A program made the position numbers and the translations under genes. Positions 1-20,083 of a DNA stretch of 64,000 nucleotides are shown one piece after another. The notes under the pieces were generated by a model. It was not told the DNA's origin. It saw nothing but the letters and a program-made list of their open reading frames with translations, and did not search any database. The number at the start of each line of letters is the position of its first letter. Position 1 is the stretch's first letter. Origin of the DNA: Macrostomum lignano (lineage: Eukaryota); the NCBI GenBank assembly GCA_002269645.1, contig NIVC01000102.1, forward strand, positions 887,950-951,949, read 5' to 3'.

Positions 1-214
1 AAAATACGTTGTCGTCTTTAATCATTCAGCCGAATAAAACAACGCAGGTATATTTTGCATTGCTCTATAGCAGTTGAGTTAAGTTAGAAACCTTTTTAGT
101 CTTCAGTTCATAACAAACATTTTAGATGACGACAATTTGAACTTTTGCAACAATTGTTTAAATTAATAGCCTAAAATTACTCTTAAAATGTTAGAAATTC
201 TTTAAATGACCTAT

Positions 215-760
215 TCCTGGTATTTCTTCAGGTGGCGGCCATTGCATGATCTCTGTACAGTTCCCTCAAGTCCGTACAGGTTATTGCTTATGACATGTTC
301 GACCATGTAAATCTTGGTACACCACGGTGTCTTCAGTTTGCCACCCTTCCGATCGTCACGGTCGAAGTTCCGCAGAAACACCTTGTCACCGACTTTGAAG
401 CTGAGGATGCTGACAGACAGCGCACTTTTGAACGCAATCTTAAATAGATTTTTCATGCCGTCCCAGTGATAGGTCAGCTTCGATAGCTTATACCAGTGGC
501 AGATGCCCGATTTTCATGGATCAATCAACACCACTCTTCTTGATGTTCTACCTCCAGGCGACGCACCGTTGACCGATAGCGCTTCTCCTGACTATCATTC
601 CTGAGATCTGATGGAACAGCTGCTGGCCATCTTGCTTTTTTTCAACTTGCTTTTTAAGTTGTTCTTCTCCTTTGTTATTGTCAAAGACGCAGGGATGTTT
701 TTTGCGCCGCTATGCAAGTAAAGTTTTGTATCGGAATACGCGACACACATATTTATGATA
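215..760 (-). pseudogene. Degenerate Gypsy-type integrase relic (possibly Ginger/GIN-like), catalytic core missing
   Basis: ORF 211..456 has FKVGDKVFLRN..RKGGKLKTPW..Y.V..V, resembling the GPY/F C-terminal module of Gypsy-type integrases. It is preceded in frame by KLSKLTYHWDGMKN, resembling the end of the integrase zinc-binding region. Stops occur upstream and no DDE core is seen. Confidence 0.5.
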
Positions 761-1164
761 TTAGTGTCTTAAAATAAAAAGCCAAGTGCACGAAGTCCAG
801 TGTACTAGTAGTGGATATACATGCCAACGTGTTGCGTAACAAAATGTACAATGATACATATCATACTGTATAGATTTAGATGTACTGAAAGTCAGAGGAC
901 TTAAAAAAATTTCAAAAGACTTTTGGACGAGAATGCGCGGCTATAAAAAATTCGGCAATATCCATTGAGGTAATACGAATACGAATCACCACCTCGTATC
1001 AGATCATTCTCTGCGATTATTGACAAGTTTTTTATTTCGTAATCCTCAGAGAGAAATCACTCTAGAAGTGCGCTTGACATGACTTATGTCGTGCCGTATT
1101 CCATCTGGGCTCGAATAAAATAACGCATCCAAAGTTACCCAGTGTTGTGTCTTCTGTTTTTTAA

Positions 1165-1678
1165 TGACAAATCAAATGAGCAAGTCTTGAACTTAAAATG
1201 TTAAATTAACCAGCCGATCTTCGACTCTTGTCTTTTTATTTATGTAATCCCCGCTTTAGCCCGGCCAGCTGCCTATCTCCTCCGTGTATTTTCATTTCTT
1301 GGACTCCAAGAAATAATTGTCTATGGCTAAAAAACATTCTTTCAAATGAGTTGAGACTCCCATCAGGCGTTTCTTGGAGGCCAAGAAATAATTGTCTCTG
1401 GTAGTCTCATTTCCTCCCGCTGGCTGCGGCAATTAAATATTATAACCCCCACTTGATTCGGCTGTCTATGACCTAGAACGACTTCGGACTGCGCTTCTAG
1501 GCCTCGGCCTAGAAACGCAGTCCTCAGCCGTTCCTAGGCCAAAGAAACGAAATCAAGTGGGGATTATCTTATACTTCTGCAAGCCTAGCTTGCTCTTGTT
1601 ACGCGTAGATCGCTAAAGCGTACGGTGCGTTGGCAAGCAAATTATTTTGTTTATGGTTCGGCTTGGCTTATAGCCACA
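1165..1678 (-). repeat. 3' LTR of the Gypsy element (1165..1190 plus 1575..1678)
   Basis: 1164-1190 matches 8043-8069. 1575-1678 matches 8077-8180 with 6 substitutions in ~104 bp. On the minus strand it starts TG (TGTGGCTATAAG) and ends CA (TTTGTCA). Confidence 0.85.
1191..1574. mobile_element. Non-autonomous Crypton-associated element (internally deleted derivative) inserted in the 3' LTR
   Basis: ~1240-1404 matches ~14065-14300, and 1402-1574 shares its flanks with 14912-15044. The two parts join at a TAG microhomology, skipping the YR remnant present in the 14-kb copy. Confidence 0.7.
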
Positions 1679-1720
1679 GCGTCTCCCCTTTTTATAAAAA
1701 TAACTTGAACAGTTTAAGTC

Positions 1721-2092
1721 CATGGATGAATGAATAGAATGGATTGCTATTCTGGCTCTGGCTATTTTCGTTTTTGACTCTTTTGCATCCGGTTCCCCCC
1801 GTGCCTTTTCATTGGTTGATGATTGCCATAGACAATTTTCGGCCTTCGCCCCTTTCTTTCGATGCACAAGCGCAAAGAACTGAGAATTTCAACAAAGTTC
1901 AATTTCAACACAAGTAACTTCTATTTACTAACAAGAAAGCGCTTGTGCATCGAAAGAAAGGGGCAAAGGCCGAAAATTGTCTATGGAAATCATCAACCAA
2001 TGAAAAGGCACGGGGGGGAACTGGATGCAAAAGAGTCAAAAACGAAAATAGCCAGAGCCAGAATAGCAATCCATTCTATTCATTCATCCATG
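1721..2092. mobile_element. Fold-back MITE (~150-bp inverted arms, ~66-bp spacer) with 8-bp TSD; P- or hAT-type
   Basis: Arms 1721-1871 and 1938-2092 are near-perfect reverse complements with termini CATGGATGAA...TTCATCCATG. TTTAAGTC flanks both sides (1713-1720, 2093-2100). Confidence 0.9.
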
Positions 2093-2129
2093 TTTAAGTC
2101 CCAAACTTGAGTGATGAAGGAAGTCTCAA

Positions 2130-5100
2130 AATAGTCACTCCTTGTAATTCACTTTTGGCTTTTGCTCCAGCCGTGTGCTGCGCCGTGGTAATTCTGGTAT
2201 AGCTGGCTTAAACGTATGGTCCACTCGGACTGAGAATCCATTTGCAGTTCCGAAATGCCATCGTCATCGTGCACATGCTTTCCACCAGGGTTGCCATCGT
2301 TTTCACGCATCATTGGGTTTCCAATGCTGACATTCTTGTTCGAATCTAATTGATCGTCTTCCTGAGACTTCTGGTTTGAGCTTGTTCGTTGAATTTGATC
2401 TCTGTGCACTTTCTGGAATTTTCCGTCTTCCAGCTTGACAATTGCGGTATTCCTTCCTAATGGCTTGATCAGCTTGGCCTCGAGTGTTGACTTCTCCATC
2501 TTGTAAACTACGGTTTCACCAGGACTCCATCCAGCTGCTGACATCAAAGGTACACGCAGTTTTATTCCCATCAGTAATACTGCTAGTGATGTGTCTCCTT
2601 TGCCCGCTGATGCACGGTAGAATAGAAGGTACCTGTCGATTGCGGCTTTGGAAAATCCATTTGCACTGACAGCTTCTTTTATTGTACGAACAAATCGCTC
2701 AGCCAGACCGTTGCTAGCTGGGTGGTATGCTGGGGTTGTTACATGATCGCACCCGATTTGAGTCAACCAACCTCGTGTCTCTTAGCTAACAAAGCTTGAT
2801 CCATTGTCGGACACCAGGACTCTCGGTACCCCTAGCTGGGAGAATGTTCTCAACCTCGAGATCACCGTAGTGGATGTCATGTCCCGTGTCATAGTTCGAG
2901 TAGTTCATAGTTCATAGTTCGAATGAGAATCAACAATAACGAGCAAATATTGTCCTTCTATCGGACCCGCAAAATCGATGTGAATTCGATCCCAGGGGAC
3001 TTGTGGTGCTTGCCATGAAGTTCGGAAATTCCTATTTAGAGGCTTCGCCTTCTTGCATGTCAGACAACAACCAACTACACGCTCTACCGCCTTATCGACA
3101 CCTGGCCACCAGAAGTACTCGCGCAATAGAGACTTAGTGCGTGCCATGCCTAGGTGTACACCGTGAGCTGCGTTCACTGCTTTATCTCGAAGTGCAACTG
3201 GCAAGACTATCTTGAACCCACGAAGCACCAAGTCTCCCTCAGTTGATAGTTCTCCAGCCAGTGGTTTGTAGCTACGCATCTCACTGTTCGAGAACTGTCC
3301 AGTTTGAATTGCCTCTCGGAGATTTCGCAGTTCGTGGCACTTCCTGGACCAAAACCGAATATCGGTCAGCTTGAGCAGATGACTTTCTGAAAGATGGATT
3401 GCACCAATCGCGTGAGTTGGAGCCTCCATCGAAGCGTTTACAAGCCTAGATAGTGCATCAGATCGCATCTCCGCCGACTTCCGATATGTTATGCTGTAGT
3501 TGTAGCCGGACAATAAAATAGCCCATCTTTGCAGGCGCGCCGAAACCCTTTCTGGTAGCTGACTGGAGGGTCCGAACACGAAGGTCAGAGGGCGGTGGTC
3601 AGTTGCTAGCGAGAATTCTCTGCCACAAAGAAACCGGTGACATCGCCGAATGCCCCAGACAATCGCCAATGCTTCGCGTTCGATCTGCGAATACCTCTTC
3701 TCTGCCGGTGACAACAACTTGCTAATGGAGATTATGGGCCTGCCTTCCTTAGAGATCACGCCACCAATGGCCACCTGCAAAGCGTCACATTCGATTTCCA
3801 CTGGTTTCTTCGGATCGTACGAATGCAACATAGACTTAGTCGACAGTGCCATCTTGATCTTATTGAAGGCTTGTTCGTGCTTGTCTGTCCAAGTGAACTC
3901 GGCTCCTCTGCGTCTAAGCTGTGACAGGGGCTCAATGAGTTCTGCGAGGTTGCGAATAAATTTACCGCATAAATTAACGAGGCCAAGAAACGATTCCAAT
4001 TCCGGTAGATTTTTAGGGGCTGACATCTCCCTTAACGCGCGCACCTTCTCTTCATCTGGCTTCACTGTCCCTGACTCGAGAATGTGACCCAGAAAGCGGA
4101 CCCGAGTCTGCATTATCTGACATTTTTCCTCGTTTACTGTCAAGTTGTGCTTGGCCAACCGTGCTCTAACTTCAGCTTCTCTGTCTCTGAGGTCTTCTTT
4201 GGTCTCGCCGCCAATGAGAATATCATCGACATATTCTGCTGCTTCAGAAATTCCTTGAATCACTTCCACAATGTAACGTTGGAAAATACTGGGGGCAGTC
4301 TTTAACCCGAAGACTAGACGGTTGTATCTGAAGTTCCCGAATGGTGTAGACATCACAGTGATATCTTTGGAAGAGTCATCTAGGTGCACCTGGTTATATG
4401 CCTTCTCGAGATCCAGAATCGTGTAGTATTTGCAATTTGTCACTGCTGCGAATGCTTCTTCAACTGTCGGCAACGGGTAGCTATCCTGCTGTAGCTGTGG
4501 ATTGACTGTCGTCTTATAGACGACACAGATCCTGAGACCGCCATTGGGTTTTTGCACAGTCACAATGGGTGACGCCCACTGCGAAAAGCTAACTTGCTTG
4601 ATAACTCCGTCAGTCACAAGCTTGTCGATCTCGCATTTCAGACGCTCGCGCAATGCGAATGGCACAGGCCTCGCTTTGATGTACTTGGGCACTGCGCCAT
4701 CGACTAATCGTAAGCTTGCCTTGAACGGAACTGAATCCTTCATCTCTGTATGTCCAATAGAGACGCATTCCGGATTGAGTTTGATGACATCTCGTCCGAG
4801 CAATGCAAAGTTGCGGTTTGAGCGTACTACTTGAAACGTAATCTTGATGTTTCTTCCTTTCCATTCCGTGACGACAGGCAATGAACCCAATTGGTCGAAT
4901 TTGTGTCCGTCGGTGTAGCCCACCAAAGTCGAGGTGCTACCTTGCAACTTCGGCTTTCCAAATTTCCACCACAGCTTGCTGGACAGAACTGAAACTGAAG
5001 CTCCCGTGTCAATCTGACAGATTGTGGATTGCATTTTGCTTTCCACTTGACATGCCAGCTTCACTGTAGAGCACGACGCTTCTCTGCCAGTGTCAGTGTG

Positions 5101-5880
5101 CAAAATGTCTCTTTGTGCAGAATCCTCAGCCACAAAGTTCTTTTGACCGGATACGCTTGACCGACATGCCTTTTGAAAGTGGTTTGGCTTACCGCATCTC
5201 TTGCAGGTTTTTCCCATAGCCGGGTATGCTGTCTTTGGATGCTGGTTGCCACCACACCGAGGGCACTTCTTGTCTCCTCTGGGTGGGATGACAGTGTTGG
5301 TTTTGAGCTGCCGATTTTCATGACCGTCCCTTCTGCTTTTGATGCCGTTCGCTGACTGCATTATTTGTGTGTTCTTCAGTGACGCATACGCCTCGGCTTC
5401 CGCCACAGCAGCCTTGAAGGTTAGCTCCTCAAAATCTCGGATTAGCAGCTTTGCTATGATGACCTTATCATTCAGTCCGCAGATGAATTGGTCCCGGAGC
5501 CGTTCCTCCTTGTTGCTAAATGCACATTTATCCGACGCTTTGAGCAGCCTCTCAGCGAATTCTCGAATGCCCTCTTTTGCGTCCTTTTTGGCATTTTGAA
5601 AGGCGTACCGTTCAGACAGGACATATGTTTTAGGCACCAGGATCTCCTTCAGCGCCTTTTTGAGCTCTTCGAAAGACATTGTGCTCGGTAATGTAGGAGC
5701 GAGATGATCCGCCAGAGTGTCGGACAGACCAGCAGACAGACGCATGAGCAAAATCTGCGCCTTTTCTTCTTCTACCTATTTGCAGAGATTGGCCGTAACT
5801 GTGAAGCGTTCCATACATCGTGGAAATGACTTTCCTTCCTCCAGCTTCTCAATGTCGATCATGTTAAGCATTTTGTTTCC
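2130..5880 (-). pseudogene. Gypsy gag-pol (Gag zinc knuckles, protease, RT, RNase H, integrase) with stops and frameshifts
   Basis: ORF 2905..5751 has CKRCGKPNHFQKAC, IDTGAS, YVDD, CDA/TDH, HLG..C..C and WDRIHIDFAGP. The integrase continues with VSDNG and HPASNGLAERFVRT (ORF 2149..2766) and ends RRSTRLEQKPKVNYKE* near 2130. There is an in-frame stop at 5776-5778, a short-duplication frameshift near 2895-2920, and a stop near 2785. Confidence 0.92.
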
Positions 5881-6121
5881 GATCATTGGCTGGTGGAATT
5901 GTGCAGTTTGGCCGATTCCTTCCAGACTCGAAGGCAGTGGCACTTTGCCATCCTTAGTCACCGTCTTTGCTGCAGACTTCACTGGCGATGCCATTTTCTC
6001 AGATGCCGGTGTTGGTGGTGCCATCCTGCTTGCGATGCCGCTGTTGTGTCTTCTGTTTTTTTTTCTCGCAGCGCACGAGTGCCATAGACCATTTAAGCAC
6101 AAAAAATCGATGTATGAGTTG

Positions 6122-8045
6122 CATTGTATTACGTTGGCTTAATACTTTAGATGGCGCGTTAGATGCACGCTCAGTTAATTTGTCTTAACCATAGACAAAA
6201 ATGCGTGAAAGGCACGCAAGTTGATTGAGTGTTGCGAAGAAGGGAATAAGAAGCTGTTAAATTAACATCACTTGTGAGAGAATATGGCTGAGCCACCAAC
6301 TAAAGTCAGACTTCTGAATCTGAGCAAATTTCCGAACGAAATGATTTCCGGCTTGTCCACCAATGAGATTGACGACATTCTGAACGAGCCTGATAATCTA
6401 CCGGAGTCGGCAATTGATCGAGAAGAGGAGGATCTTCTGGAGGCACTTTTCAAGAAGATACCTGACGAAGAAGCTGAACTACTTGAATTGGAACAGCTCG
6501 TTTCCGAAATCGAGGACACCGCTGCTAGTAAAAGTGTGACAAAGGCTACCGAATATTATGTCGGTAAGTTGCAGAGCTTCATGGAGAACCATCCGTCAGT
6601 TCAGCGTGATTTGGCGACTTCTACACCGCGCGAGATCGACAGTCTATTGCGATACTTCTATGGCTCACTTCGCAAGAGGAATGGCGAATACTTTGCTCCA
6701 GCCACGTTGATTTGTATCCGAGCTGCGCTCTACCGGCATTTCATGTCGACAAGGCGAATCAATATTCTAACTGACGACGCATTCTATGCTTCCAATACGA
6801 CACTGAAGTCAATGGGCAGAATCTTCATTGCCCGAGGCGGACGCGCCCGACACTTCCAATCGATCGAGCCTGTTGATCTGAAGAGGCTGTCTGACTACTT
6901 CGATCGGAAATCTCCAGAGGTGCTACTTCATGAAGTGTACTACAACGTTATTTTCTACTTCGGAAACAGAGGTCGCGAGTGGATCCGTTCACTAAGCGAT
7001 GATTCCTTTCGATTTGAGACGGATTCCGATGGGATTGAAGTGGTGCGCTTTGTTGCTGGAACAGTAAAGAATGTTTGCAAAGAACTCTCCAGGAACTCGT
7101 GTGACGATGTCAAGCAAGCTATTATGAGTGCGTTGCCAGACAGAAGCCGCTGCCCTGTGGAAGCTATGAAGCTCTATTTAGCTAAGCGTGAGCAATCCAT
7201 TCCATCAAGCAGTTCGGAGACGGCGAAAAGATATCCTTTCTTCTTACTGCCGAAAAAGACTGGTTGGGCGAATGGAGCATGGTACTGCCCGAACAAGGCA
7301 ATTGGTGTGAATCCTTTGGGCCAGCTGATGACCGTCATTTCAAAGAAGGCGAATTTATCAAAGTCATACACTGCGCACTGCATTCGATCCACGGTAATAA
7401 AGGAGCTATCTAACGCAGGTTACAGCGCGTCTGATATCTGCAAAGTCACTGGCCATAAGCAGACGCGAACTGTAGAACGCTACTTACGCTTTGGCTCCAG
7501 AAGGGACGGCGAAATGCGAGACATGTCGGTCAGCTTGGCTTCTGCACTACACAAGGATGATTCCATGCAAGACGTGATTATGAAAGACTCTTCTACCGTC
7601 ATGAGCCAGTCACTGATTATTTCTGACACGTCGGACGTTGCTGGTGGGACGCCAAGTGATGACGCCAAGAAGAAACCAACTGTGGTTTATAACTTCTACA
7701 ACACTGTCAACAACTGCACGTTCAATTCTTAGAGTGAGTAATAACAATGAGTAATAATTTTCCCACACTGAACTTCCAAATGCTGAACGCCTTCATTCTC
7801 ATTAGCTTTCCCTGTCAATGATAGGTAATCGTCTACGCAGTCTACCTTGTTTACACAGTTCCCTGTTATTCGTTCGTTGTACTTGTAGCAGAAGTATACT
7901 TATTAAAATATACTCACTTTCCGTGCATTACACGCACGCGTTAGACGCACGCTTGTTGCTTTTACTCAGATAGAAAATTGCCATAGACACCTACATTAGA
8001 CGCACAGTAAATCGTGCATCTAACGCGCGCCAGCGTGATACAATG
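6122..8045 (+). mobile_element. Crypton-type tyrosine recombinase DNA transposon (left boundary may extend to ~6075)
   Basis: Single YR ORF flanked by imperfect inverted ends: CATTGTATTACGTTGGC..GCGCGTTAGATGCACG (6122-6170) versus CGTGCATCTAACGCGCGCCAGCGTGATACAATG (8013-8045). Subterminal TTAGA(C/T)GCAC repeats are present. Confidence 0.75.
6284..7732 (+). CDS. Tyrosine recombinase, Crypton/DUF3504 (ZMYM/KCTD1-related) type, 482 aa, apparently intact
   Basis: Intronless ORF with YR catalytic motifs FGNRGRE (R), TAHCIRST (HxxR), VTGHK (H) and VERY (Y). N-terminal LLRYFYGSLRKRNGEYFAPATL is typical of DUF3504-type proteins. Confidence 0.9.
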   Translation: MAEPPTKVRLLNLSKFPNEMISGLSTNEIDDILNEPDNLPESAIDREEEDLLEALFKKIPDEEAELLELEQLVSEIEDTAASKSVTKATEYYVGKLQSFMENHPSVQRDLATSTPREIDSLLRYFYGSLRKRNGEYFAPATLICIRAALYRHFMSTRRINILTDDAFYASNTTLKSMGRIFIARGGRARHFQSIEPVDLKRLSDYFDRKSPEVLLHEVYYNVIFYFGNRGREWIRSLSDDSFRFETDSDGIEVVRFVAGTVKNVCKELSRNSCDDVKQAIMSALPDRSRCPVEAMKLYLAKREQSIPSSSSETAKRYPFFLLPKKTGWANGAWYCPNKAIGVNPLGQLMTVISKKANLSKSYTAHCIRSTVIKELSNAGYSASDICKVTGHKQTRTVERYLRFGSRRDGEMRDMSVSLASALHKDDSMQDVIMKDSSTVMSQSLIISDTSDVAGGTPSDDAKKKPTVVYNFYNTVNNCTFNS

Positions 8046-8180
8046 ACAAATCAAATGAGCAAGTCTTGATATTTATTTCTGCAAGCCTAGCTTGCTCTTG
8101 TTACGCGTAGATCGCTAAAGCGTAGGGTGCGCTGGCAAGCAAATCATTTTGTTTATGGTTCAGCTTGGCTTACAGTCACA
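8044..8180 (-). repeat. 5' LTR of the Gypsy element (~137 bp)
   Basis: Minus strand reads TGTGACTGTAAG...GCAGAAATAAATATCAAG...TTTGTCA and contains AATAAA. It is homologous to the 3' LTR pieces. Confidence 0.85.
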
Positions 8181-9036
8181 GCACCCAGGCGAGTACTTTT
8201 CTGCCTAGGATAATCCTTGGCATAACACTGGCACTGTACGATACCGCACCACTAGCTGCCCGTGGTCGCGGGGGTTAGCAAAATGGTTGGCAACACACGC
8301 CTCTTCGCCGCATCCGGATGCCTAGAACCGCCTTCTGAAGTGACACATTTTGGCCCTAAGAAAGTTCCCATCCAGATCGAGTGTATTTTAACCAATGAAT
8401 GCGCTTCAACTAGCAAAAGCTGAGGACACGACCCCAACCAATGGAAAGTACCTATGCAACAACCAATGCGACCAAGACTGAAAAGTAACTATAAAAGCTC
8501 ATTTTAACCAAGCAAGAAGCTCGCCTCTCTTCCCCTTTCTAGTCCGCCCCTCTTTCCCCTCTTTTGCCTCTCCTCTGCCTACCTTATTTTGCACGCTCTC
8601 TCCGCAGGACAACCTTTGATTGACACAGTTAGGATATCAACCAAAACACCAAAACTGATAAATTGACTAACTAAAACTAAACCAACAACCAACCCACGCT
8701 CCACAATAGACTGAACCTTCGGTTCACTCAAACAATCAGAAACTCCTTGTAACTTGAGCTGAACGAGCTTCTTATTTGGAATTCCATCTTAGACATTAAA
8801 TTTTGTAAGATTACGAGTACATCTCGAGATTGTGACCATCAAATACAACGGTCTGTAAGTTACAATCAAGTGTTTGCATCATCAGGAAAAGTCAGTTGAA
8901 TCCGCCGCCTCAGTTATTTGGCTCTCACATTAATACTTGAAGTAGACATAGAGCCATAGGAGTGAGAGACCAGAAGAACGATACCATATTTAAAATATTT
9001 CACTGCAGCTGAGTCAAGTCACGTTAGTCAAGTCAC

Positions 9037-11835
9037 TCACCCCACTCCACTGAGATCCAGCAGTCGCAGCACCTGCCGCTGCTCAAACCGCTGTGCCACC
9101 TGCGCACACGTCAGACCCCGACCGTCTCGATGACTCGCATTCGCTCCTCTGTCTATCAGAGCCTTGGCTGCTCGCACGTGACCGGCTTCGCACGCTCGTG
9201 ACAGAGCAGTCCGACCCTGACTGTCTTCAGCACGCACTGACGCACCGAGATCAATGAGTTTCTCAATGACCTCGTGATGACCTGCATCAGCTGCCAGCAT
9301 GAGAGCAGTGGCTCCAGTGTTGTCTGGCAGATCGACATGCTGTGTGCTGACTCGGTTATCATTGATCAGTGTGACAGCAATAGCGACGTGTCTTTGAGAG
9401 ATGGAGAGACAAAGCAGCTGTGTGATGTGAGCTGGCTGCATTCGAGAGAGGGTGCTGGTGAGAACAGAGTTCCTTCCTTCGATGGCCATTGCTGCAGTGA
9501 AGCTGAGGATGGAGCTGGATTGAAAGAGCCAGTCGGGCTCGAGGCCGAGGGAGGCAACGACATCTTCGTGAATACGAGAGCAAGCCGCGACTGCGCATTG
9601 GAAACGGAGATTCGCTCTCTGATCCGGACTTGAGAGACACGAGATGAGAAATTTTAAGACTTCTAACTGACCAATGCTTACAGCATATTTCGCAGGCTCG
9701 ATGCAGCACTGATATCTGTTTGTTTGGTCCACGACTGTTGGCACCAAAAACTTGACGACTTCCCACTGATGAGTTCTCGCAGCAGATTCAGCAGCTTTGA
9801 TGCAGCAATCATCTCTTTTTGTTTGGTCAGCGACTGAATGGACGAGAAACTTGACGACTTCCCACTCACGATTGCTTGCAGCAGATTCAGCAGCCTTGAT
9901 GCAGCACTCATCTCTTTTTGTTTGGTCAGCGAATGTCGGCACGAGAAACTTGACGACTTCTAAGTGACCCTTGGTTGCAGCCGATTCAGCAGCTTTCATG
10001 CAGCAATCATCTCTATTTGTTTGGTCAGCGACTGTATGGACGAGAAACTTGACGACTTCTAAGTGACCCTTGGTTGCAGCCGATTCTGCAGCTTTCATGC
10101 AGCACTCATCTCTTTTTGTTTGGTCAGCGAATGTCGGCACGAGAAACTTGACGACTTCTAAGTGACCCTTGGTTGCAGCCGATTCAGCAGCTTTCATGCA
10201 GCAATCATCTCTTTTTGTTTGGTCAGCGAATGTCGGCACGAGAAACTTGACGACTTCTAAGTGACCCTTGGTTGCAGCCGATTCAGCAGCTTTCATGCAG
10301 CAATCATCTCTTTTTGTTTGGTCAGCGAATGTCGGCACGAGAAACTTGACGACTTCTAAGTGACCCTTGGTTGCAGCCGATTCAGCAGCTTTCATGCAGC
10401 AATCATCTCTTTTTGTTTGGTCAGCGAATGTCGGCACGAGAAACTTGACGACTTCTAAGTGACCCTTGGTTGCAGCCGATTCAGCAGCTTTCATGCAGCA
10501 ATCATCTCTTTTTGTTTGGTCAGCGAATGTCGGCACGAGAAACTTGACGACTTCTAAGTGACCCTTGGTTGCAGCCGATTCAGCAGCTTTCATGCAGCAA
10601 TCATCTCTATTTGTTTGGTCAGCGACCGTCAGCACCAGAAAATTGACAACTTCCCACTGATCAATGCTTACAGCAGATTTTGCTGCGTCGATGCAAAACT
10701 GATCTCTTTTTGTTTGGTCAGCGACTGTCAGCACGAGAAACTTGACGACATTTAAGTGACCCTTCATAGCAGCCCAGTTCGCAGCTTTGATGCAGCACTG
10801 ATCTCTTATTGTTTGGTCAGCGACTGTCTGGACGAGAAACTTTAAAACTTCTAAGTGACCATTTCTTGCGGCAGATTTGGCAGCCTCGATGTAGCAGTGA
10901 TCTTTTTTTGTTGGGTCAGCGACTGTCTGGACGAGAAACTTGACGACTTCCAAGTGACCACTGTATGCAGCAGATTCCGCAGCGTCAATGCAGCACTGAT
11001 CTCTTTCAGCGACCGTCGGTATCAGAAACTTGACGGCTTCTAGATGACCATTTCTTGCAGCAGATTCTGCAGCTTTTGTGCAGCAGCGATCTCTGTTTGT
11101 TTGGTCATCAACTTGTTGCACGAGAAACTTGACGGCTTCTAGATGACCATTTCTTGCAGCAGATTCCGCAGCCTCGATGCAGCAGCGATCTCTGTTTGCT
11201 TGGTCAGCGACTTGTGGCACGAGACACTTAACGACTTCTAACAGACCATTTCTTGCAGCAGATTTTGCAGCGTTGGTGCAGAGCTGATCTTTTTTTGTCC
11301 GGTCAGTTGCTGTCTTCACTAGAAACTTCACAACTTCCCATTGACGATGAAATTCAGCAGATTTCGCAAGGTCAATGCAGCAGTTGTTTCTTTTCGTTTG
11401 GTCAGCGACTGTCTGCACGAGAAACTTGACGATTTCCCACTGACGATTTTCTGCCGCATATTTAGCAGCCTCGATGCAGCACTGATCTCTTTCTGCTTGG
11501 TCAGCGATTATCGGCACGAAAAACTTGACGACATCCCACTGACCATTTCTTACAGCCTTTTCTCCAGCCCGGATGCAGCACTGATCTCTCTCTCCTTGGT
11601 CAGCGACTGTCGACACTACAAACTTGACGACATCCCACTGACCATTTCTTACAGCAGATTCGGCAGCCTCGATGCAGCAGTGATCCCTTTTTGCTTGGTC
11701 AGTGAATTTTTGAACAAGAGACTTGACGTCTTCCAAGTCACCGAGCCTTCCAGCCAGTCGAGATTGTTCTCGAAGTTGCCTTTGGTTTTGGTCCATTGTG
11801 CGACTGTTGATAGTTAAAATGTAGCTTGGTGACAT
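9037..11835 (-). CDS. Ankyrin-repeat protein (~20 tandem 33-aa Cys-Cys-containing repeats plus 3 canonical C-terminal ANK repeats); may splice onward
   Basis: 932-aa ORF. Near-identical 99-bp units (DQTKRDDCCMKAAESAATKGHLEVVKFLVPTFA) at ~9900-10620. C-terminal TALMLAA and TALSRAC ANK motifs. A strong GTGAGT donor overlaps the stop at ~9040. Confidence 0.85.
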   Translation of the reverse strand: MSPSYILTINSRTMDQNQRQLREQSRLAGRLGDLEDVKSLVQKFTDQAKRDHCCIEAAESAVRNGQWDVVKFVVSTVADQGERDQCCIRAGEKAVRNGQWDVVKFFVPIIADQAERDQCCIEAAKYAAENRQWEIVKFLVQTVADQTKRNNCCIDLAKSAEFHRQWEVVKFLVKTATDRTKKDQLCTNAAKSAARNGLLEVVKCLVPQVADQANRDRCCIEAAESAARNGHLEAVKFLVQQVDDQTNRDRCCTKAAESAARNGHLEAVKFLIPTVAERDQCCIDAAESAAYSGHLEVVKFLVQTVADPTKKDHCYIEAAKSAARNGHLEVLKFLVQTVADQTIRDQCCIKAANWAAMKGHLNVVKFLVLTVADQTKRDQFCIDAAKSAVSIDQWEVVNFLVLTVADQTNRDDCCMKAAESAATKGHLEVVKFLVPTFADQTKRDDCCMKAAESAATKGHLEVVKFLVPTFADQTKRDDCCMKAAESAATKGHLEVVKFLVPTFADQTKRDDCCMKAAESAATKGHLEVVKFLVPTFADQTKRDDCCMKAAESAATKGHLEVVKFLVPTFADQTKRDECCMKAAESAATKGHLEVVKFLVHTVADQTNRDDCCMKAAESAATKGHLEVVKFLVPTFADQTKRDECCIKAAESAASNREWEVVKFLVHSVADQTKRDDCCIKAAESAARTHQWEVVKFLVPTVVDQTNRYQCCIEPAKYAVSIGQLEVLKFLISCLSSPDQRANLRFQCAVAACSRIHEDVVASLGLEPDWLFQSSSILSFTAAMAIEGRNSVLTSTLSRMQPAHITQLLCLSISQRHVAIAVTLINDNRVSTQHVDLPDNTGATALMLAADAGHHEVIEKLIDLGASVRAEDSQGRTALSRACEAGHVRAAKALIDRGANASHRDGRGLTCAQVAQRFEQRQVLRLLDLSGVG

Positions 11836-12198
11836 TGAAGATAGTGAAGCAGTGGAAGGAAAGGGAAAGAGGAGGGGAGAAAGGGATGCGGGGAGGGAGG
11901 GAGAAATATGTGGAGAAGGGGCTGCTATATACGGTTGTGAATTTTTTGAAAAAGAGTTTTAAAGAGTTTTACCTCATTTTAACTACCATTTGGTTGCTTG
12001 AATCCTTCCACTGATAGATGTATCCATTCTGCGGTGTTGATTAATTAAAGTTAAAGACTATTAGTACAAGGGCGGAAGTGGTAGAGTAAAGTGAAAAAGG
12101 GGAGGAAAACGGAGATAGACAAGACAGAATGAGAGGGGGGTTTGACCTTTAAAAAACGAATTTTTATTAAACTTTTTGAATCCTACCTATCACCCTTG

Positions 12199-12408
12199 GC
12201 TGCTGTCAAAGTGGCAAATGTCAGTCACGGCTGCTGTCAGAGTGGCAGATGTCAGTCACGGCTGCTGTCAGAGTGGCAGGTGTCAGTCACGGCTGCTGTC
12301 AGAGTGGCAGATGTCAGTCACGGCTGCTGTCAGAGTGGCAGGTGTCAGTCACGGCTGCTGTCAGAGTGGCAGATGTCAGTCACGGCTGCTGTCAAAGTGG
12401 CAGATGTT
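12199..12408. repeat. 30-bp tandem repeat (GTCAGTCACGGCTGCTGTCAGAGTGGCAGAT-like)
   Basis: About 7 copies read directly. Confidence 0.9.
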
Positions 12409-12949
12409 TCAAAGGTTTGTGCAGCCGGTTGCCAGAAAGATTTTACCGCCTCATCTCTCAGCTGCCCTCCCTTTTTCAGCCTCTGGCGAGGCCAACCACC
12501 CCCGGCCTGAGCAAGCAACAGAAGCTTCTCTCCCGAGCATGAGCGCTGAATCCTCCGCCTTCGCCTCTGTGCACCCAGCATGGCAACGGAGAGGCTGCAG
12601 CTGCAGCGGCCACCCCAAGCTGTACTTGATGAGACTGAGCTGACCCATTGTGCCTCAGTACAGTGTGAGATCTTTAAATGCATTTAATGGCCCACTGTGA
12701 GATGTAAAAAGCTGTTCAGTGTGTCAACTGTACTCAGTCTGTTTTTGCAAATTCATGTTCAAAGCAAAACAATGAATGGCTTGAAATCGCATCAGTTTGG
12801 TGGGGCGGCTCGGGTGCACAGGAAAGTACATTGCCAAACTAGCCGTAGCCTACTTTATACGAGGTATTGCCATAGACTGCGTGTAAAAACCCATAACTTC
12901 ACGCAATACCGCACGCTGCCAGCGTGCAGCAATAGTTGATGGCGTTTTG

Positions 12950-13600
12950 CTTTATTTAGCCAGCATAAATAATAAACAATGAAATTAACTTTGTGAAGCA
13001 GCACTGTGACAAAAGACCGGTCTATGTAGTTACGTATCTCGTTGAAGGCCTCTTTTTCCACAACCTCGAAGTGCTAAGTGCGTCCACCGTTTTGCAAAAA
13101 CAGTCTACAAACAGCCTTCTACGCCTCGCTTGCGCTGATGTTTACTTGCTGCCGAGTGCGCAAAAGGAAACGGAAAAGACCGGCACGCATGCACATCAAA
13201 GTTGCCGGTGAATAGTAGCTACCGTTGGTCTTTGCGCAACGTAGCATAAAAATACCTTAACTTGTTGGCTAGTTCTTTTTCTTCGCAACTGATCATGTTG
13301 AAAGAGGCACAGGTGAGAGCCACATACTCTTCCAGGAATCACCGAAAGCGATCCACGGCCCTGTCTTCTTGTCTGGCCGTCGACTTGACCTTGGTGTCTT
13401 CCTGCATGCTGTTTCATCACCAGTGCCTCCAACTTATCAGTCTGGCTATCCGGTAACAGCAAAAAAGTTCCTCAATTGCAGCTCATCCGTCAATATTCTC
13501 GTTCAGGTCATCAAATTTGATCTTCTTAATCTCTGAATTTCTATCAAACAGTTGGACTTGCTGTCCAAGACCGCAAGGTTAGACCGCTGATCATTTGATC
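12950..13600 (-). pseudogene. Degenerate Crypton YR, N-terminal half
   Basis: Manual translation across frameshifts and stops gives ELANKLRYFYATLRK(T)NGSYYSPATLMCMRAGLFR...HFEVVEKEAFNEIRNYIDRSFVTVLLHKV. This is colinear with LLRYFYGSLRKRNGEYFAPATLICIRAALYR...HFQSIEPVDLKRLSDYFDRKSPEVLLHEV of ORF 6284. Confidence 0.8.
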
Positions 13601-13666
13601 AGGAAACCAGGACAGATCCAAAATGTTTATTTGTTTGGGTGTCGCGCTTAATTCATACCTCCATTT

Positions 13667-14060
13667 CATATATCCCCCACTTGCCCCGGGCAGTCGTCTA
13701 TGTTTTTAAGCTTTCAATTTATTTGCACTAGTGCAATAAATTATTTATTTCACTTTGCATCGATGTAAGTAAATGTATCCCCCTTTTGCCCCGGGCGAGT
13801 GTCTATGTGACGCATGTTTTCATTTATTTCCCTAGGTGAATAAATCATTTATTTCCCGCTGCCCCGCGGGCTGATAAATTCGAGACAACAACCATAGACA
13901 ACGAACGGGGATACATATCATATTCCCCACTCATTTAGCTGTCTAGGGCCAAAAGCACTCGCTGTCTCGATCATTGACCTCGGCTTCGCCTCGGTCAATA
14001 AACGAGACACCTCTTGCTTTTGCCCGCTAGACAACAAAATAAATGGGGAATATATACCAT
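13667..14060. mobile_element. Stack of small palindromic non-autonomous cassettes
   Basis: Two ~105-bp homologous units have central palindromes TTGCACTAGTGCAA and TTTATTTCCCTAGGTGAATAAA. Inverted ends are ATGTATCCCC..GGGGATACAT and ATATTCCCCA..TGGGGAATAT. The last unit carries a CCTCGGCTTCGCCTCGG core. Confidence 0.65.
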
Positions 14061-15044
14061 TTACTTTAATCCCCGCTTTGGCCCGGTCAGCTGCCTATCT
14101 CCACTGTGTATTTTTATTTCTTGGACTCCAAGAAATAATTGTCTATGGCTAAAAAACATTCTTTCAAATGAGTTGAGACTCCCATCAGGCGTTTCTTGGA
14201 CTCCAAGAAATAATTGTCTATGGCTAAAAAACATTCTTTCAAATGAGTTGAGACTCCCATCAGGCGTTTCTTGGAGGCCAAAAAATAATTGTCTTTGGTA
14301 GAAACACATATGCTGTTATACTTTTGAAACAAGACCGGTTTCACAACACTGAATAGCAATAAATGGGGATCGTAAGTGAAAAATCTAACAACGAACAGTT
14401 ATAAGCAGTCTTGTAGCAGAGGGTGTCAGAGGGAGTCAGCGAAGGAGGGAAGATCAAACTAATCGAAGTGGAACACCACTCTGTTGCTGTCTCCAAAAGC
14501 CTCTATGCGCATTTTTTCTTCGTAGGAGCCTGCACCTCCAGAGGAGGCAAGGGCACTTGCACCTGCGCCGCAGTCACCTGAGACTCACTCACCGGTTGGC
14601 CGGTTGAGGAGCCACTCAACAGTGCACTCGTGCGTTTCTCCATGGTCACCGAGGTACCGATGTACTTCTCCACTGCACTGGAGCTGTGGCCAGTCACACG
14701 GCAGATATCCGCCCGTCCCATACCAGCCTCGCGGAGGCGCGGGGTTGCGCAACTCTTACGGAGACTCTGATTCGAGTAGCGTCCAGTGTCGGAGGGAGCA
14801 ACCACGGCCACGGCGTCCTTGACACACACACACACAACTGAAGCTTTTCTGATGTTACACAGAATATTCAGCTTTATAGAGCTTTATAGCCAATAGTCTA
14901 TGGCCGAGGCTTAGTCTCATTTCCTCCCGCTGGCTGCGGCAATTAAACATTATAATCCCCACTTGATTTCGTTTCTTTGGCCTAGGAACGGCTGAGGACT
15001 GCGTTTCTAGGCCGAGGCTTCATCAAGTGGGGATTATCTTATAC
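14060..15044 (-). mobile_element. Crypton-related element carrying a YR C-terminal remnant, a 75-bp tandem duplication and an IR-bounded cassette
   Basis: Homologous to 1240-1574. 75-bp unit repeated at ~14117-14266. Shares its right end (GGATTATCTTATAC) with the 1574 copy. Confidence 0.65.
14503..14800 (-). pseudogene. Degenerate Crypton YR, C-terminal catalytic fragment
   Basis: YSNQSLRKSCATPRLREAGMGRADICRVTGHSSSAVEKY aligns with YTAHCIRSTVIKELSNAGYSASDICKVTGHKQTRTVERY of ORF 6284. Confidence 0.8.
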
Positions 15045-15382
15045 ATAACACAGAACTATAACACAACCATAGACAAAATTGTCTTAACGTTCTTAAATGT
15101 GGGGGCTCTGCCCCCACACCCCCGCAAGGAAGCTGAGCGCCCCCTCGACCCCGCTTTCCCTGTTACGCTGCATTGCTGAGTTTTTCTCTCTCACTCTGCC
15201 GCTGCACGGCCATCTCAACTGCCGCAGCTTCAGCCAGTTGGTTGGCAAGCAGCTCGGCTCTCTGCCCCTCTCTCTCTGTCTCACCCTCACTGCCGACCCG
15301 CCACTCCTTCTAGTGCAAATTGAGACAAAGGGCTCAGGTGCGCTGCTGGCGCCTCCACGTTGATGCCGTCAAGACGGCATCC

Positions 15383-16146
15383 GACAGTGCTCAGGTCCCA
15401 GCCCAGAGTGACAGATCACAGTGCTCAGGTCCCAGCCCAGAGTGACAGATCACAGTGCTCAGGTCCCAGCCCAGAATGGCAGATCACAGTGCTCAGATCC
15501 CAGCCCAGAGGGACAGATCAGTGCTCAGATCCCAGCCCAGAGGGACAGATCAGTGCTCAGATCCCAGCCCAGAGGGACAGATCAGTGCTCAGATCCCTGC
15601 CCAGAGGGACAGATCAGTGCTCAGATCCCAGCCCAGAGGGACAGATCAGTGCTCAGGTCCCAGTCCAGAGTGACAGATCACAGTGCTCAGGTCCCAGCCC
15701 AGAGTGACAGATCACAGTGCTCAGGTCCCAGCCCAGAATGACAGATCACAGTGCTCAGATCCCAGCCCAGAATGGCAGATCACAGTGCTCAGGTCCCAGA
15801 CCAAAGTGACAGATCACAGTGCTCAGATCCCAGCCCAGAGGGACAGATCAGTGCTCAGGTCCCAGCCCAGAGGGACAGATCAGTGCTCAGATCCCAGCCC
15901 AGAGTGACAGATCACAGTGCTCAGATCCCAGCCCAGAATGACAGATCACAGTGCTCAGATCCCAGCCCAGAGTGACAGATCACAGTGCTCAGGTCCCAGC
16001 CCAGAGGGACAGATCAGTGCTCAGATCCCAGCCCAGAGTGACAGATCACAGTGCTCAGATCCCAGCCCAGAGGGACAGATCAGTGCTCAGATCCCAGCCC
16101 AGAGGGACAGATCAGTGCTCAGGTCACAGCCCAGAGTGACAGATCA
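15383..16146. repeat. 32/34-bp minisatellite (ACAGATCACAGTGCTCAGGTCCCAGCCCAGAGTG)
   Basis: More than 20 tandem copies in two length variants. Confidence 0.95.
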
Positions 16147-16439
16147 TGTTGTCGCACTGATGACTAATAGTGCATAATATTACTGTGACTAAGAGATTTC
16201 CCATAGACATTCTGGGGGACTCGCGCTTTACAGATATAGGCTTGAAGCCAGCGTTTGCTAGCTGGAAAATATACAAGCGCATTGTAGAGGGTCAAGAGGT
16301 CATATAGAGTTTCGACCTCGCAGAAATTTGTGTCTTACGACTTCAACTCCGGTTCATCAAAGAAGGGAAGAACACAACAGATCATGGCGTCGCAAGTGCG
16401 CAAATGCTGAAATGAGCTAGGCCTGCTGATAGTTCACCT

Positions 16440-17308: not shown

Positions 17309-19220
17309 TCATCTGCGCACCTGAGGCTCAGCACATTGGCTCAGCTCCATGAAAGCTCGCACCTCGGCGCTCCCCATGTTGAACCCGTACTCCAAGTCCC
17401 TGACACCTTTGTACATGATGTTCTTCTTGCCGGGATAGTACAGTCGAATTGAGTGAGTCATCTTCTCAAAGTCCATCGATGGCCGATTCTTCACCTTGGC
17501 CCAGGTGCGGGCTGCTGACTCGCTGTTGATGAAGCGGAACAGTCCTGAGGGGGCGTCCAGCCACTCCACTGATGGGTGACTGCTGATGAGCAGGTGCAGC
17601 AGGTGCTTCCACAGGACTTTGCGTCGGCTGGGGACTGGCAACTGGGCTGTCGGCTCCAGGACTGCGGGACAGAATGAGGAATATGGGATTAGAGATCTTG
17701 CTGTCTAATCTCACCAGGGAACCCCGCTAATCCCAGTAGAGAATCCCCGCTAATCCCACCAAAGAATCTCCGCTAATCCCCACCAGAGAATCCCGCTAAT
17801 CCCACCAGAGAATCCCCGCTAATCCCACCAAAGAATCCCCACTAATCCCACCAGAGAATCCCCGCTAATCCCACCAGAGAATCCCCGCTAATCCCACCAA
17901 AGAATCCCCGCTAATCCCACCAGAGAATCCCCGCTAATCCCAGTAGAGAATCCCCGCTAATCCCACCAAAGAATCCCCACTAATCCCACCAGAGAATCCC
18001 CGCTAATCCCACCAGAGAATCCCCGCTAATCCCACTAGAGAATCCCGCTAATCCCACCAGAGAATACCGCTAATCCCACCAGAGAATCCCCGCTAATCCC
18101 ACTAGAGAATCCCGCTAATCCCACCAGAGAATCCCCGCTAATCCCACTAGAGAATCCCGCTAATCCCCACCAGAGAATCCCCGCTAATCCCACCAGAGAA
18201 TCCCCGCTAATCCCACCAGAGAATACCGCTAATCCCACCAGAGAATCCCCGCTAATCCCACTAGAGAATCCCGCTAATCCCACCAGAGAATCCCGCTAAT
18301 CCCCACCAGAGAATCCCGCTAATCCCACCAGAGAATCCCCGCTAATCCCACTAGAGAATCCCGCTAATCCCACCAGAGAATCCCGCTAATCCCACCAGAG
18401 AATCCCCGCTAATCCCACCAAAGAATCCCCACTAATCCAAACCTCTCTTCCAGAGCAGAAACTCGTCACTGAGGAAGCTGCCAAAATTGTCCAACAAGTA
18501 GCGGTCCATGCCGCTGAGGCCATGGGATCTGAGATGGCTGCTCACACTGTGGCTCAGTGCGGCCATCGAGTGCCTTGAAGACCGCTGGATCTGAAGCGAG
18601 TGCCGAAACATCAGAGTGCTCAGCAGCCTTCTCTGGTCCTCGAAGCTCCAGTCTGTGATGGCGAGGGCGGAGGAAAAAGTTATAAATTGGTCACTCTTGA
18701 AATGATCAATTGGTCACTCTTGAAATTATCAATTGGTCACTCTTGAAATGATCAATTGGTCACTCTTGAAATTATCAATTGGTCACTCTTGAAATGATCA
18801 ATTGGTCACTCTTGAAACTATCAATTGGTCACTCTTGAAACCATCAATTGGTCACTCTTGAAACTATCAATTGGTCACTCTTGAAACCATTAATTGGTCA
18901 CTCTTGGAACTATCAATTGGTCACTATTGAAACTATCAATTGGTCACTCTTGAAACTATCAATTGGTCACTCTTGAAATTATCAATTGGTCACTATTGAA
19001 ACTATCAATTGGTCACTCTTGAAACTATCAATTGGTCACTCTTGAAATTATCAATTGGTCACTCTTGAAACTATCAATTGGTCATTTTTTTAAATTGGCC
19101 ACCAGACCAGCACAAACGGTCAATCAGTGCAGAGCCAATATATTAAATACCTTGCAGCGCCTTTGTCCTGATTGGCAGGCCCAGATCTGCGGCCAGCTCA
19201 AGGATTTCATCAGCTGACAT
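17309..19220 (-). CDS. ETS-family transcription factor with PNT/SAM-like domain (SPDEF/PDEF-like), ~210 aa, 3 exons
   Basis: Exons 19220-19151, 18652-18443 and 17661-17309, all with GT-AG phase-1 junctions that keep frame. ETS domain LWKHLLHLL..WLDAPSGLFRFINSESAARTWAKVKNRPSMDFEKMTHSIRLYY. N-terminal EILELAADLGLP...DWSFED resembles the start of a PNT domain. The start codon may lie further upstream. Confidence 0.8.
17715..18440. repeat. ~23-bp minisatellite filling ETS intron 2 (AATCCCCGCTAATCCCACCAGAG)
   Basis: About 30 tandem copies. Confidence 0.95.
18684..19087. repeat. 23-bp minisatellite in ETS intron 1 (AATTGGTCACTCTTGAAACTATC)
   Basis: About 17 tandem copies. Confidence 0.95.
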
Positions 19221-19532
19221 GCCGGACTCATTCGCTTGTGTGTTTGCGGTTTTTTCTAACTTGGTTTTGTTAAGCCACTGACAGACTGGCAAGCTAAAAT
19301 ATGCACTGCCTTCTGAGTCAGTACCTTGTAGATGTGCAGTTAAAAATAGAATTTCGCCTTTGGCTGCGCGACCTGTTGAGCACTCTGGGTTAGTTTCGTC
19401 CGGGCTGGGGTGGGTCTTCAAATGGTTGGTCAAAGCAGCTCAAAAAGGATAGAGGGTTGGGTGCGGACTTTGCAGAAGGCTTCAAGTAGAAAATATGCTC
19501 ATGCAACACCCACGCAAAATACATAACAGTGA

Positions 19533-19547
19533 GATAGATAGACAGAC

Positions 19548-19590
<43 letters not shown>

Positions 19591-19591
19591 C

Positions 19592-19678
<87 letters not shown>

Positions 19679-19683
19679 AAGAC

Positions 19684-19733
<50 letters not shown>

Positions 19734-19775
19734 GTACGTAGATACGTAGATACGTAGATAGGTAGGTAGGTAGAT
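19533..19775. repeat. (GATA)n microsatellite
   Basis: Read directly. Confidence 0.97.
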
Positions 19776-20083
19776 CTATTTGTGTATCTAATTATTCAAA
19801 TTCGTTTCTGCTTCAGAAATTAGAAGAAGAGACGCTCCCAATTCTCAGAACTGAGAAAGCTGCTCACTCAGACGGTAACTCAGCATTCGCAAAGATAAGA
19901 TTAGCCACCAGTTCTGCATGCTTTGCTTGCAGTCAACAGTGAACGGAGCCACAAACATTTTCAGGTTTAAACAGTGATAAGAAATGCCCATTTTAGTCAG
20001 GAAAGCAGAGAATTATTTTTTCCATTCTTCAGAAGAAGCAGAAAGGAGCGCACAGCAGTTACTGTCTGCGCCAGAATTCAGTC

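Follow-up and report, generated by a model that had tools for sequence, protein, structure and literature searches.

Two states of a palindromic tip module in a putative non-autonomous Crypton-type family of Macrostomum lignano

Tyrosine recombinases (YRs) invert DNA between inverted sites in bacterial invertons (fimS with FimB/FimE), and FLP does so with the repeats of the 2-micron plasmid. In bacteria, YRs also use folded single-strand sites, as in integron attC (IntI) and XerCD with CTX phage. Quasi-palindrome template-switch mutation (Ripley-type strand switching) and the deletion of palindrome arms need no enzyme site. The movement of Cryptons has been inferred almost entirely from sequence. 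Animal Cryptons were reported without terminal repeats of any sort, and Cryptons are recognised by a short direct repeat at their limits and by true ends that lack a terminal inverted repeat (PMC3212892). Here we analyzed a 64-kb window of one M. lignano assembly (GCA_002269645.1, contig NIVC01000102.1, positions 887,950–951,949; positions below are those of the window unless another locus is named) and compared the two copies of a YR-associated element that it contains. Copy 1 (1191–1572, minus strand) and copy 2 (about 14059–15042, minus strand) each hold, near one tip, a cassette bounded by inverted 16-nt repeats. Judging from their sequence anatomy, the cassettes appear to be the tip module of a new non-autonomous Crypton-type family, seen here in two states.

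The left flank of the cassettes, TCTCATTTCCTCCCGCTGGCTGCGGCAATTAAA, occurred exactly twice in the window, at 1405–1437 and 14915–14947 (0 expected), and the whole shared flank that leads from the element body to the cassette (1403–1441 and 14913–14951, plus strand) was identical at 38 of 39 positions. The right flank CTTATAC was also common to both copies and consists of the 5-nt element end CTTAT followed by two similar target bases. The 16-nt repeat ATAAYCCCCACTTGAT was found four times in the window (0.67 expected), twice per cassette in inverted orientation. Cassette 1 has its left repeat, ATAACCCCCACTTGAT, at 1442–1457 (plus strand) and its right repeat, a minus-strand copy of ATAAYCCCCACTTGAT, at 1552–1567; the corresponding repeats of cassette 2 are ATAATCCCCACTTGAT at 14952–14967 (plus strand) and a minus-strand copy of ATAAYCCCCACTTGAT at 15022–15037. 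The pairs were complementary at 15/16 and 16/16 positions, so that each interior is bounded by inverted repeats, which are separated by 94 nt in copy 1 and 54 nt in copy 2. Position 5 of the left repeat is C in cassette 1 and T in cassette 2, and a weak extension lengthens the repeat to 21 nt (18/21 in each copy).

The sequence at 14968–15018 was the exact reverse complement of 1501–1551 (51/51), and the inverted match grew to 67/67 when the 16-nt repeat was included (1501–1567 against 14952–15018; repeat finder and BLAST of the window against itself). When aligned in the same orientation, the cassette interior showed 9 mismatches and 4 gap columns in 51 positions, against none in 51 when inverted; BLAST also paired 1402–1503 with 14912–15013 directly, at 87% identity. 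Beyond the cassettes, 9 of 234 positions (3.8%) differed between the copies. Since the inverted arm matched perfectly while the direct arm was far more diverged than the rest of the element, the inverted relation is the true one. The match between the two cassettes is far beyond chance. The flanks, the 16-nt repeats and the reverse-complement segment lying in opposite orientation between common flanks had all been described in a first-pass annotation made from the sequence alone, and these statements were confirmed here.

Although the flip is real, the first-pass annotation had missed that cassette 1 (1442–1567) is a 126-bp imperfect palindrome, with arms about 80% alike, and also contains a diverged arm oriented as in copy 2. 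Its single-stranded DNA fold had an energy of −37.5 kcal/mol (z = −8.6). From left to right, cassette 1 is composed of the left repeat (1442–1457), a 12-nt spacer (1458–1469), unit X1 (1470–1503), TC (1504–1505), unit X2 in inverted orientation (1506–1540), a spacer (1541–1551) and the right repeat (1552–1567). Unit X is a 35-nt hairpin, GGCCTAGRAAC-N13-GTTYCTAGGCC, present twice, head to head, in cassette 1 and once in cassette 2. The left arm of cassette 1 (spacer and X1, 1458–1503, plus strand) was about 82% identical to 14968–15018 in direct orientation and carries a half-site, GGCCTAGAAGC, at 1493–1503. The "flipped" segment at 1501–1551 (plus strand) comprises the palindrome centre, the right arm X2 and its spacer; that is, the flipped 51 nt are one arm of the cassette 1 palindrome. 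Cassette 2 (14952–15037) is 86 bp long and has a single arm: its interior (14968–15021, plus strand) consists of the spacer, X (14979–15013), GAGGC and TTC, a leftover of the lost arm, and is followed by the right repeat. Both cassettes stop 5 nt short of one element tip, namely at the terminal CTTAT (1568–1572 and 15038–15042). The first-pass annotation had allowed for a hairpin-mediated event or a larger palindrome as the source of the match, and this proved correct in part: the flipped piece is a palindrome arm, and a hairpin or an exchange of arms can therefore explain it without an enzyme. When the hairpins were compared with Rfam, matches to microRNA precursor models were sub-threshold and none lay above the threshold.

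Copy 1 is 382 bp long and lies inside the 3′ long terminal repeat (LTR) of a Ty3/gypsy retrotransposon (1143–8183, minus strand). Alignment of the two LTRs with each other revealed two nested insertions, one per LTR, at 1191–1572 and about 6061–8041. The junctions of copy 1 read GTCTTGA/ACTTAAAATG and CTTAT/ACTTCTGC. Its termini, ACTTAAAATG... and ...ATTATCTTAT, are mutually dissimilar, so there is no terminal inverted or long terminal repeat. An ACTT direct repeat is present at its limits (1191–1194, and 1573–1576 in the target), as judged from this one insertion. The empty 5′ LTR (8042–8183) reads GTCTTGA-TATTT-ATTT-CTGC, with five extra bases, TATTT, relative to the filled site. Copy 1 thus fills one LTR and is absent from the other LTR of the same retrotransposon, as expected of a mobile element. 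The body, composed of 75-bp tandem repeat units (1295–1404, plus strand; 98% identical to 14192–14301), as well as the flank, the cassette and the terminal CTTAT, are common to both copies; in copy 2, which was delimited by BLAST of the window against itself, ACAT then follows (CTTAT/ACAT). The cassette motif TAATCCCCRCTT occurred six times in the window (0.46 expected), three times per element copy and nowhere else. The third end motif, TAATCCCCGCTT, is oriented as the left 16-nt repeat and lies at 1245–1256 (plus strand) in copy 1, 54 nt from the far tip, and at 14067–14078 (plus strand) in copy 2. A few bases beyond the latter, the likeness to copy 1 ends (alignment limit, 14059), and the low-coordinate end of copy 2 is missing or replaced just past this motif.

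Copy 2 contains an extra stretch of 610 bases (14302–14911) that copy 1 lacks, and the ends of the internal deletion of copy 1 lie in or near copies of the 75-bp repeat. This stretch encodes a C-terminal catalytic remnant of a YR (14503–14835, minus strand; YSNQSLRKS...DICRVTGHSSSAVEKY), in agreement with the earlier claim that the element is YR-associated. In the list of open reading frames (ORFs) and the alignment, the remnant showed the motif pattern ...QSLR...DICRVTGH...Y. It aligned at HxxR, GH and Y with the intact YR encoded at 6284 and with relatives, but Gln stands in place of the first catalytic His, and the gene has lost its N-terminal part. BLASTP gave 41% identity with the 6284 YR over 34 aa (E = 9e-6), and tblastn with P0001–P0003 also matched; the YR matches of the remnant are short (34–48 aa, E from 1e-4 to 1e-5), and a Pfam search of the remnant gave no match. 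The remnant in copy 2 is the sole coding capacity of the element, with no reverse transcriptase (RT) or DDE transposase. A YR is its only gene, its true ends carry no repeats, a 4-bp repeat marks its limits and one copy is internally deleted; in these features, the element fits the published description of Cryptons and of their non-autonomous derivatives. The first-pass annotation had also placed the sequence in an animal genome, which is correct (M. lignano); the best protein matches of an ankyrin ORF in the window likewise came from M. lignano.

By contrast, the proposed link between the cassettes and the intact YR gene (6284–7732) did not hold. This gene belongs to a separate Crypton unit (about 6061–8041, plus strand; limits from the LTR comparison). 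Its product of 482 aa matched Pfam DUF3504, Phage_integrase and QRICH1. The repeated motif of this unit, GCGCGTTAGATGCACG, differs from the cassette motif; GCGCGTTAGAYGCACG occurs at 6154–6169 (plus strand), 7936–7951 (plus strand) and 8013–8028 (minus strand), and a further inverted pair is found at 6122–6138 and 8029–8045. The separate insertion, the other end motifs and the limited match to the remnant indicate that the 6284 YR is not the partner of the cassette element. The cassettes therefore differ from invertons in lacking an adjacent or internal cognate recombinase: their own YR is truncated with the His-to-Gln change, and the 6284 YR resides in another Crypton. The 6284 unit additionally contains a 33-nt inverted repeat with a 15-nt indel (6122–6169 against 8013–8045), the outer 4 nt of whose right arm fall in the LTR target, and a 17-nt direct repeat that flanks the gene (6155–6171 and 7937–7953, 1782 bp apart). 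The UniProt entry P0010 (M. lignano, a 539-aa "protein kinase" model) was 100% identical to 17% of the 6284 YR, which points to a chimeric gene model that probably took in part of this Crypton.

The P0003 Crypton family was compared in five M. lignano copies (loci L001 and L008–L011). These have a 2082-bp unit in common, with the left end NTG/TAATATTCCTGCACG and the right end ...TCATTCCTGCACGCTGTGGTCAAACGACAATG/, and no target duplication. Each element holds six copies of the motif ATTCCTGCACG, which lies, among other places, at distances of 4 nt and 19 nt from the left and right tips, respectively; downstream of the gene, it makes up a palindrome whose 12-nt arms are separated by an 8-nt spacer. 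The five copies were collinear, with no flips in the stretches bounded by inverted repeats. In L008/L009, a fold-back of two inverted P0003 left-end modules was found at 3497–3671, with CATTG on both sides; its arms of 41–49 nt were 98–100% identical to the L001 end, and it abuts another left-end-like module or region with the family motif in both orientations. Thus, head-to-head end modules recur in a second Crypton family. In L010, the P0003-family Crypton lies precisely within a ~50-bp tandem repeat (about 3700–3860 and 5860–6000), and the neighbouring repeat units represent the empty site GGGGATTG/TACACTCG, showing a clean insertion without target duplication.

Among other relatives, the related motif C[AG]TT-N3-4-GCACG precedes the gene in L003 and L004, and L004 also has an inverted copy downstream. 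L006 has a hairpin with 36-nt arms upstream of the gene and a palindrome with 17-nt arms and a 6-nt spacer downstream. In a shuffle test, local inverted repeats were clearly above chance in L001 and L006, and not above chance in L004, L005, L007 or beside the 6284 gene. This test gave only partial support to the idea of a conserved inverted pair, about 55 nt apart, beside Crypton YR genes. The cassette family, the 6284 unit and the P0003 family clearly have repeated end motifs, inverted pairs among them, and those in L004 and L006 have weaker statistical support. The 16-nt repeats of the cassettes are the corresponding end motif of their own family. Some M. lignano Cryptons possess family-specific motifs of 11–16 nt near both tips, together with inverted pairs and palindromic end modules, and these repeated end motifs are candidate binding and crossover sites of the recombinases.

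We also searched for further copies and precedents. The protein search with the YR remnant found no close relative and no intact family member, and neither the 6284 YR nor the M. lignano model P0010 returned a record in exact look-ups. A pattern that accommodates either form of the cassette had no match in a metagenome scan. When the element was compared by BLAST with 11 loci (about 100 kb, M. lignano and relatives), no further copy appeared; among these loci, the locus of the nearest ankyrin paralogue, L002, has only ankyrin repeats in common with the window and is therefore a different locus. Literature searches retrieved no report of end palindromes or flips in Cryptons.

While the anatomy, the nesting, the element limits and the YR remnant could be read directly, the mechanism and the direction of the change between the two states have to be inferred. 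We favor, with about half of our confidence, an enzyme-free exchange between the palindrome arms followed by the loss of an arm. The palindrome interior would have been reversed once, or one arm would have been replaced by the complement of the other, through recombination between the two arms of the palindrome, or through template-switching between them during replication. One arm would then have lost about 40 bp by a deletion typical of long palindromes. The change would have happened once and been passed on in one lineage of copies; it would not be a working switch. The strong hairpin potential and the palindrome anatomy of cassette 1 argue for this explanation. With T at position 5 of its left repeat, copy 2 is the perfect complement of the right arm of copy 1 over 67 nt, as expected from arm-to-arm copying, which this T fits better than a crossover inside the repeats. 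The collinearity of the five P0003 copies argues against a working switch, and the confinement of the cassette motif to the two copies, as well as the separate limits and motifs of the 6284 YR unit, also favor an enzyme-free event. Several points weigh on the other side. Two copies are too few to tell how many events took place or in which direction. The breakpoints of the flip coincide with the family end motif, which, by analogy with P0003, is probably a recombinase binding site, and this makes a flip produced by the enzyme the natural alternative. The recurring head-to-head end modules of L008/L009 may themselves be recombinase products. In addition, the leftover TTC in copy 2 requires two deletions or a complex event under any model, and every scenario that we constructed for the difference between the copies needs two events.

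Inversion between the 16-nt repeats by the family's own Crypton recombinase, supplied in trans and acting in the manner of FLP or Cre, is credible but unlikely. It would account for the boundaries of the flip falling in the repeats. These match the end motif perfectly or nearly so, and the motif occurs a third time near the other element end; in P0003, the motif is likewise close to both tips and its palindrome resembles a classical recombinase core site. However, a single 16-nt repeat has no internal dyad symmetry and is thus like a half-site rather than a full core site, and the sequences beside the two repeats differ, leaving no shared overlap or crossover region. The repeats of copy 2 are 70 bp apart from centre to centre, close to the lower limit for Cre and FLP. 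Moreover, the T/C difference at position 5 could arise only through a crossover within the outermost 4 nt, unless a further mutation is assumed, the search with the YR remnant found no intact cognate recombinase, and none of the five P0003 copies was flipped. Less probable still is that the cassette is a tiny fold-back derivative, two end modules head to head, that the recombinase integrated at the tip of a resident element. The ends of such a fold-back are symmetrical and would permit integration either way round, so that the two copies would represent separate integrations or an excision and re-integration. L008/L009 carry exactly such a unit for the P0003 family, and the weak extension of the cassette repeat to 21 nt also agrees with this origin. 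Nevertheless, both junctions between cassette and body are identical in the two copies, no body without a cassette was found among the copies seen, and the cassette lacks flanking direct repeats. In copy 1, the end of the cassette coincides with that of the 382-bp insertion, indicating that body and cassette moved together at least once. Taking flipping and excision with re-insertion together, it seems doubtful, slightly more so than the inversion in trans, that the 16-nt repeats are working Crypton YR sites at which a germ-line enzyme flips the tip module or excises and reinserts it either way. Ectopic gene conversion in inverted register between the copies, 13 kb apart, or an assembly or polishing error at the palindrome is very improbable. 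A divergence of 3.8% would predict about 2.5 differences, and the match of 67/67 is only a hint of it (P about 0.08). Conversion in inverted register would itself depend on a palindrome and come down to an exchange of arms. A collapsed or chimeric read is an unlikely source, given the 20% divergence between the arms of copy 1, and the flanks are clean.

The flip matters only if it is recurrent. A recurrent flip would mean that a recombinase acts on the chromosomal DNA of an animal; otherwise, it is an ordinary palindrome rearrangement. If a recombinase does work on the 16-nt repeats, they would represent an invertible module in an animal transposon and a first handle on the DNA sites of animal Cryptons.

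The Ty3/gypsy retrotransposon that hosts copy 1 was delimited by its pol ORF domains, LTRs, target duplication and polypurine tract. Its pol ORF (5751–2905) is open through PR-RT-RNaseH-H2C2 (integrase zinc finger), and the integrase core is present only as a separate short ORF (2766–2149) with a weak match. The LTRs are ~160 bp long, about 95% alike and read TGTTGTG...CACAGCA; a 5-bp target duplication, CCCAG, flanks the element at 1138–1142 and 8184–8188, and the polypurine tract (1681–1696) adjoins the 3′ LTR. A 372-bp fold-back that is unrelated to the cassette sits at 1721–2092, between the integrase remnant and the polypurine tract. With arms of about 153 nt, 97–99% complementary, and an 8-bp target duplication, TTTAAGTC, at 1713–1720 and 2093–2100, it looks like a hAT-type miniature inverted-repeat transposable element (MITE).

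The frameshifted N-terminal half of a second YR (12915–13669, minus strand), 30–44% identical to the 6284 YR, starts about 400 bp past the point at which copy 2 is truncated. Six nucleotides before its ATG lies CAAGTGGGGGAT, which resembles the cassette repeat CAAGTGGGGATTAT; as a signal, this extra CAAGTGGGG 6 nt upstream of the remnant was not significant by itself. The end motif may mark the junction between copy 2 and a related Crypton, to which this remnant would belong. On the other side of copy 2, 56 nt beyond its tip, a perfect palindrome with 9-nt arms, TGTGGGGGC-TCT-GCCCCCACA, is located at 15098–15118. Its arms resemble the C-rich core of the cassette repeat, and it could be a target-like site or a product of chance. 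The 9-mer CCATAGACA was strongly over-represented at 1–16300 of the window (10 copies against 0.42 expected), in L001 (6 against 0.14) and in L002 (6 against 0.16). Together with its 8-mer core CCATAGAC, it was found in unrelated contexts, namely Crypton ends, the 75-bp repeats, fold-back arms and also a 50-bp satellite of L001 (20854–21554), and CCATAGACA may be a genome-wide motif of M. lignano.

The window further contains a 932-aa ankyrin-repeat ORF (9037–11835, minus strand) built of 99-bp (33-aa) tandem units. Several units are 98–100% identical to each other, suggesting a very recent expansion, and the closest M. lignano proteins are only 66–70% identical to the ORF. Satellite arrays are located at 15350–16146, 17700–18440, 18590–19180, 19468–19823 and 56830–58175; their units are of 32/34 bp, 23 bp (CTAATCCCACCAGAGAATCCCCG), another 23 bp, 8 bp, and 16/20 bp with CAAGTGGGT. 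The 23-bp satellite unit has AATCCCCGCT in common with the element end motif.

Several known kinds of elements and structures were considered for the cassette element and rejected. No RT lies within either copy, as DIRS or Ngaro identity would require, and the neighbouring RT belongs to the Ty3/gypsy element, which has ordinary LTRs and an integrase zinc finger. A fold-back or MITE with a target-site duplication would be bordered by direct repeats, which the cassette lacks, and no ends or target duplication matching those of Helitron, piggyBac or a Tc1-type MITE were found around the cassette. The palindrome is not at a free end, as in parvovirus-like flip/flop, and the cassette has no core motif of a hammerhead ribozyme.

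Like attC and the CTX phage sites, the cassettes are imperfect hairpin-forming palindromes of about 60–140 nt in YR-related mobile DNA. Those systems are bacterial, however, no structure like the R/L boxes was found in the cassettes, and the use of folded substrates by Cryptons is unsupported. The resemblance to invertons and FLP lies in DNA that is bounded by short inverted repeats, occurs in both orientations and belongs to an element that encodes or once encoded a YR. In contrast to these systems, the two orientations here are seen at two paralogous copies with no intact cognate recombinase adjacent, the repeats are unlike full core sites, and the host is an animal; the inverted DNA is a palindrome arm without a recognisable promoter or gene (no promoter model was applied). 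Quasi-palindrome strand switching resembles the present case in that one arm becomes the exact complement of the other, with an asymmetric deletion. It differs in that the present palindrome occupies the functional tip of a mobile element and has copies of the end motif as its outer 16 nt, so that the event did not take place in neutral DNA. Finally, the non-autonomous Cryptons CryptonI-1N1_RPro and CryptonA-1N1/N2_OL (Kojima and Jurka 2011, PMC3212892) are likewise short, internally deleted derivatives with only a YR as coding origin. The cassette element shares with them the lack of inverted repeats at the true ends, the lack of a usual target-site duplication, a 4-bp repeat at the limits and a recombinase of the DUF3504-related animal type. 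Unlike the described animal Cryptons, the cassette family carries a three-fold end motif and a palindromic module 5 nt from its tip.

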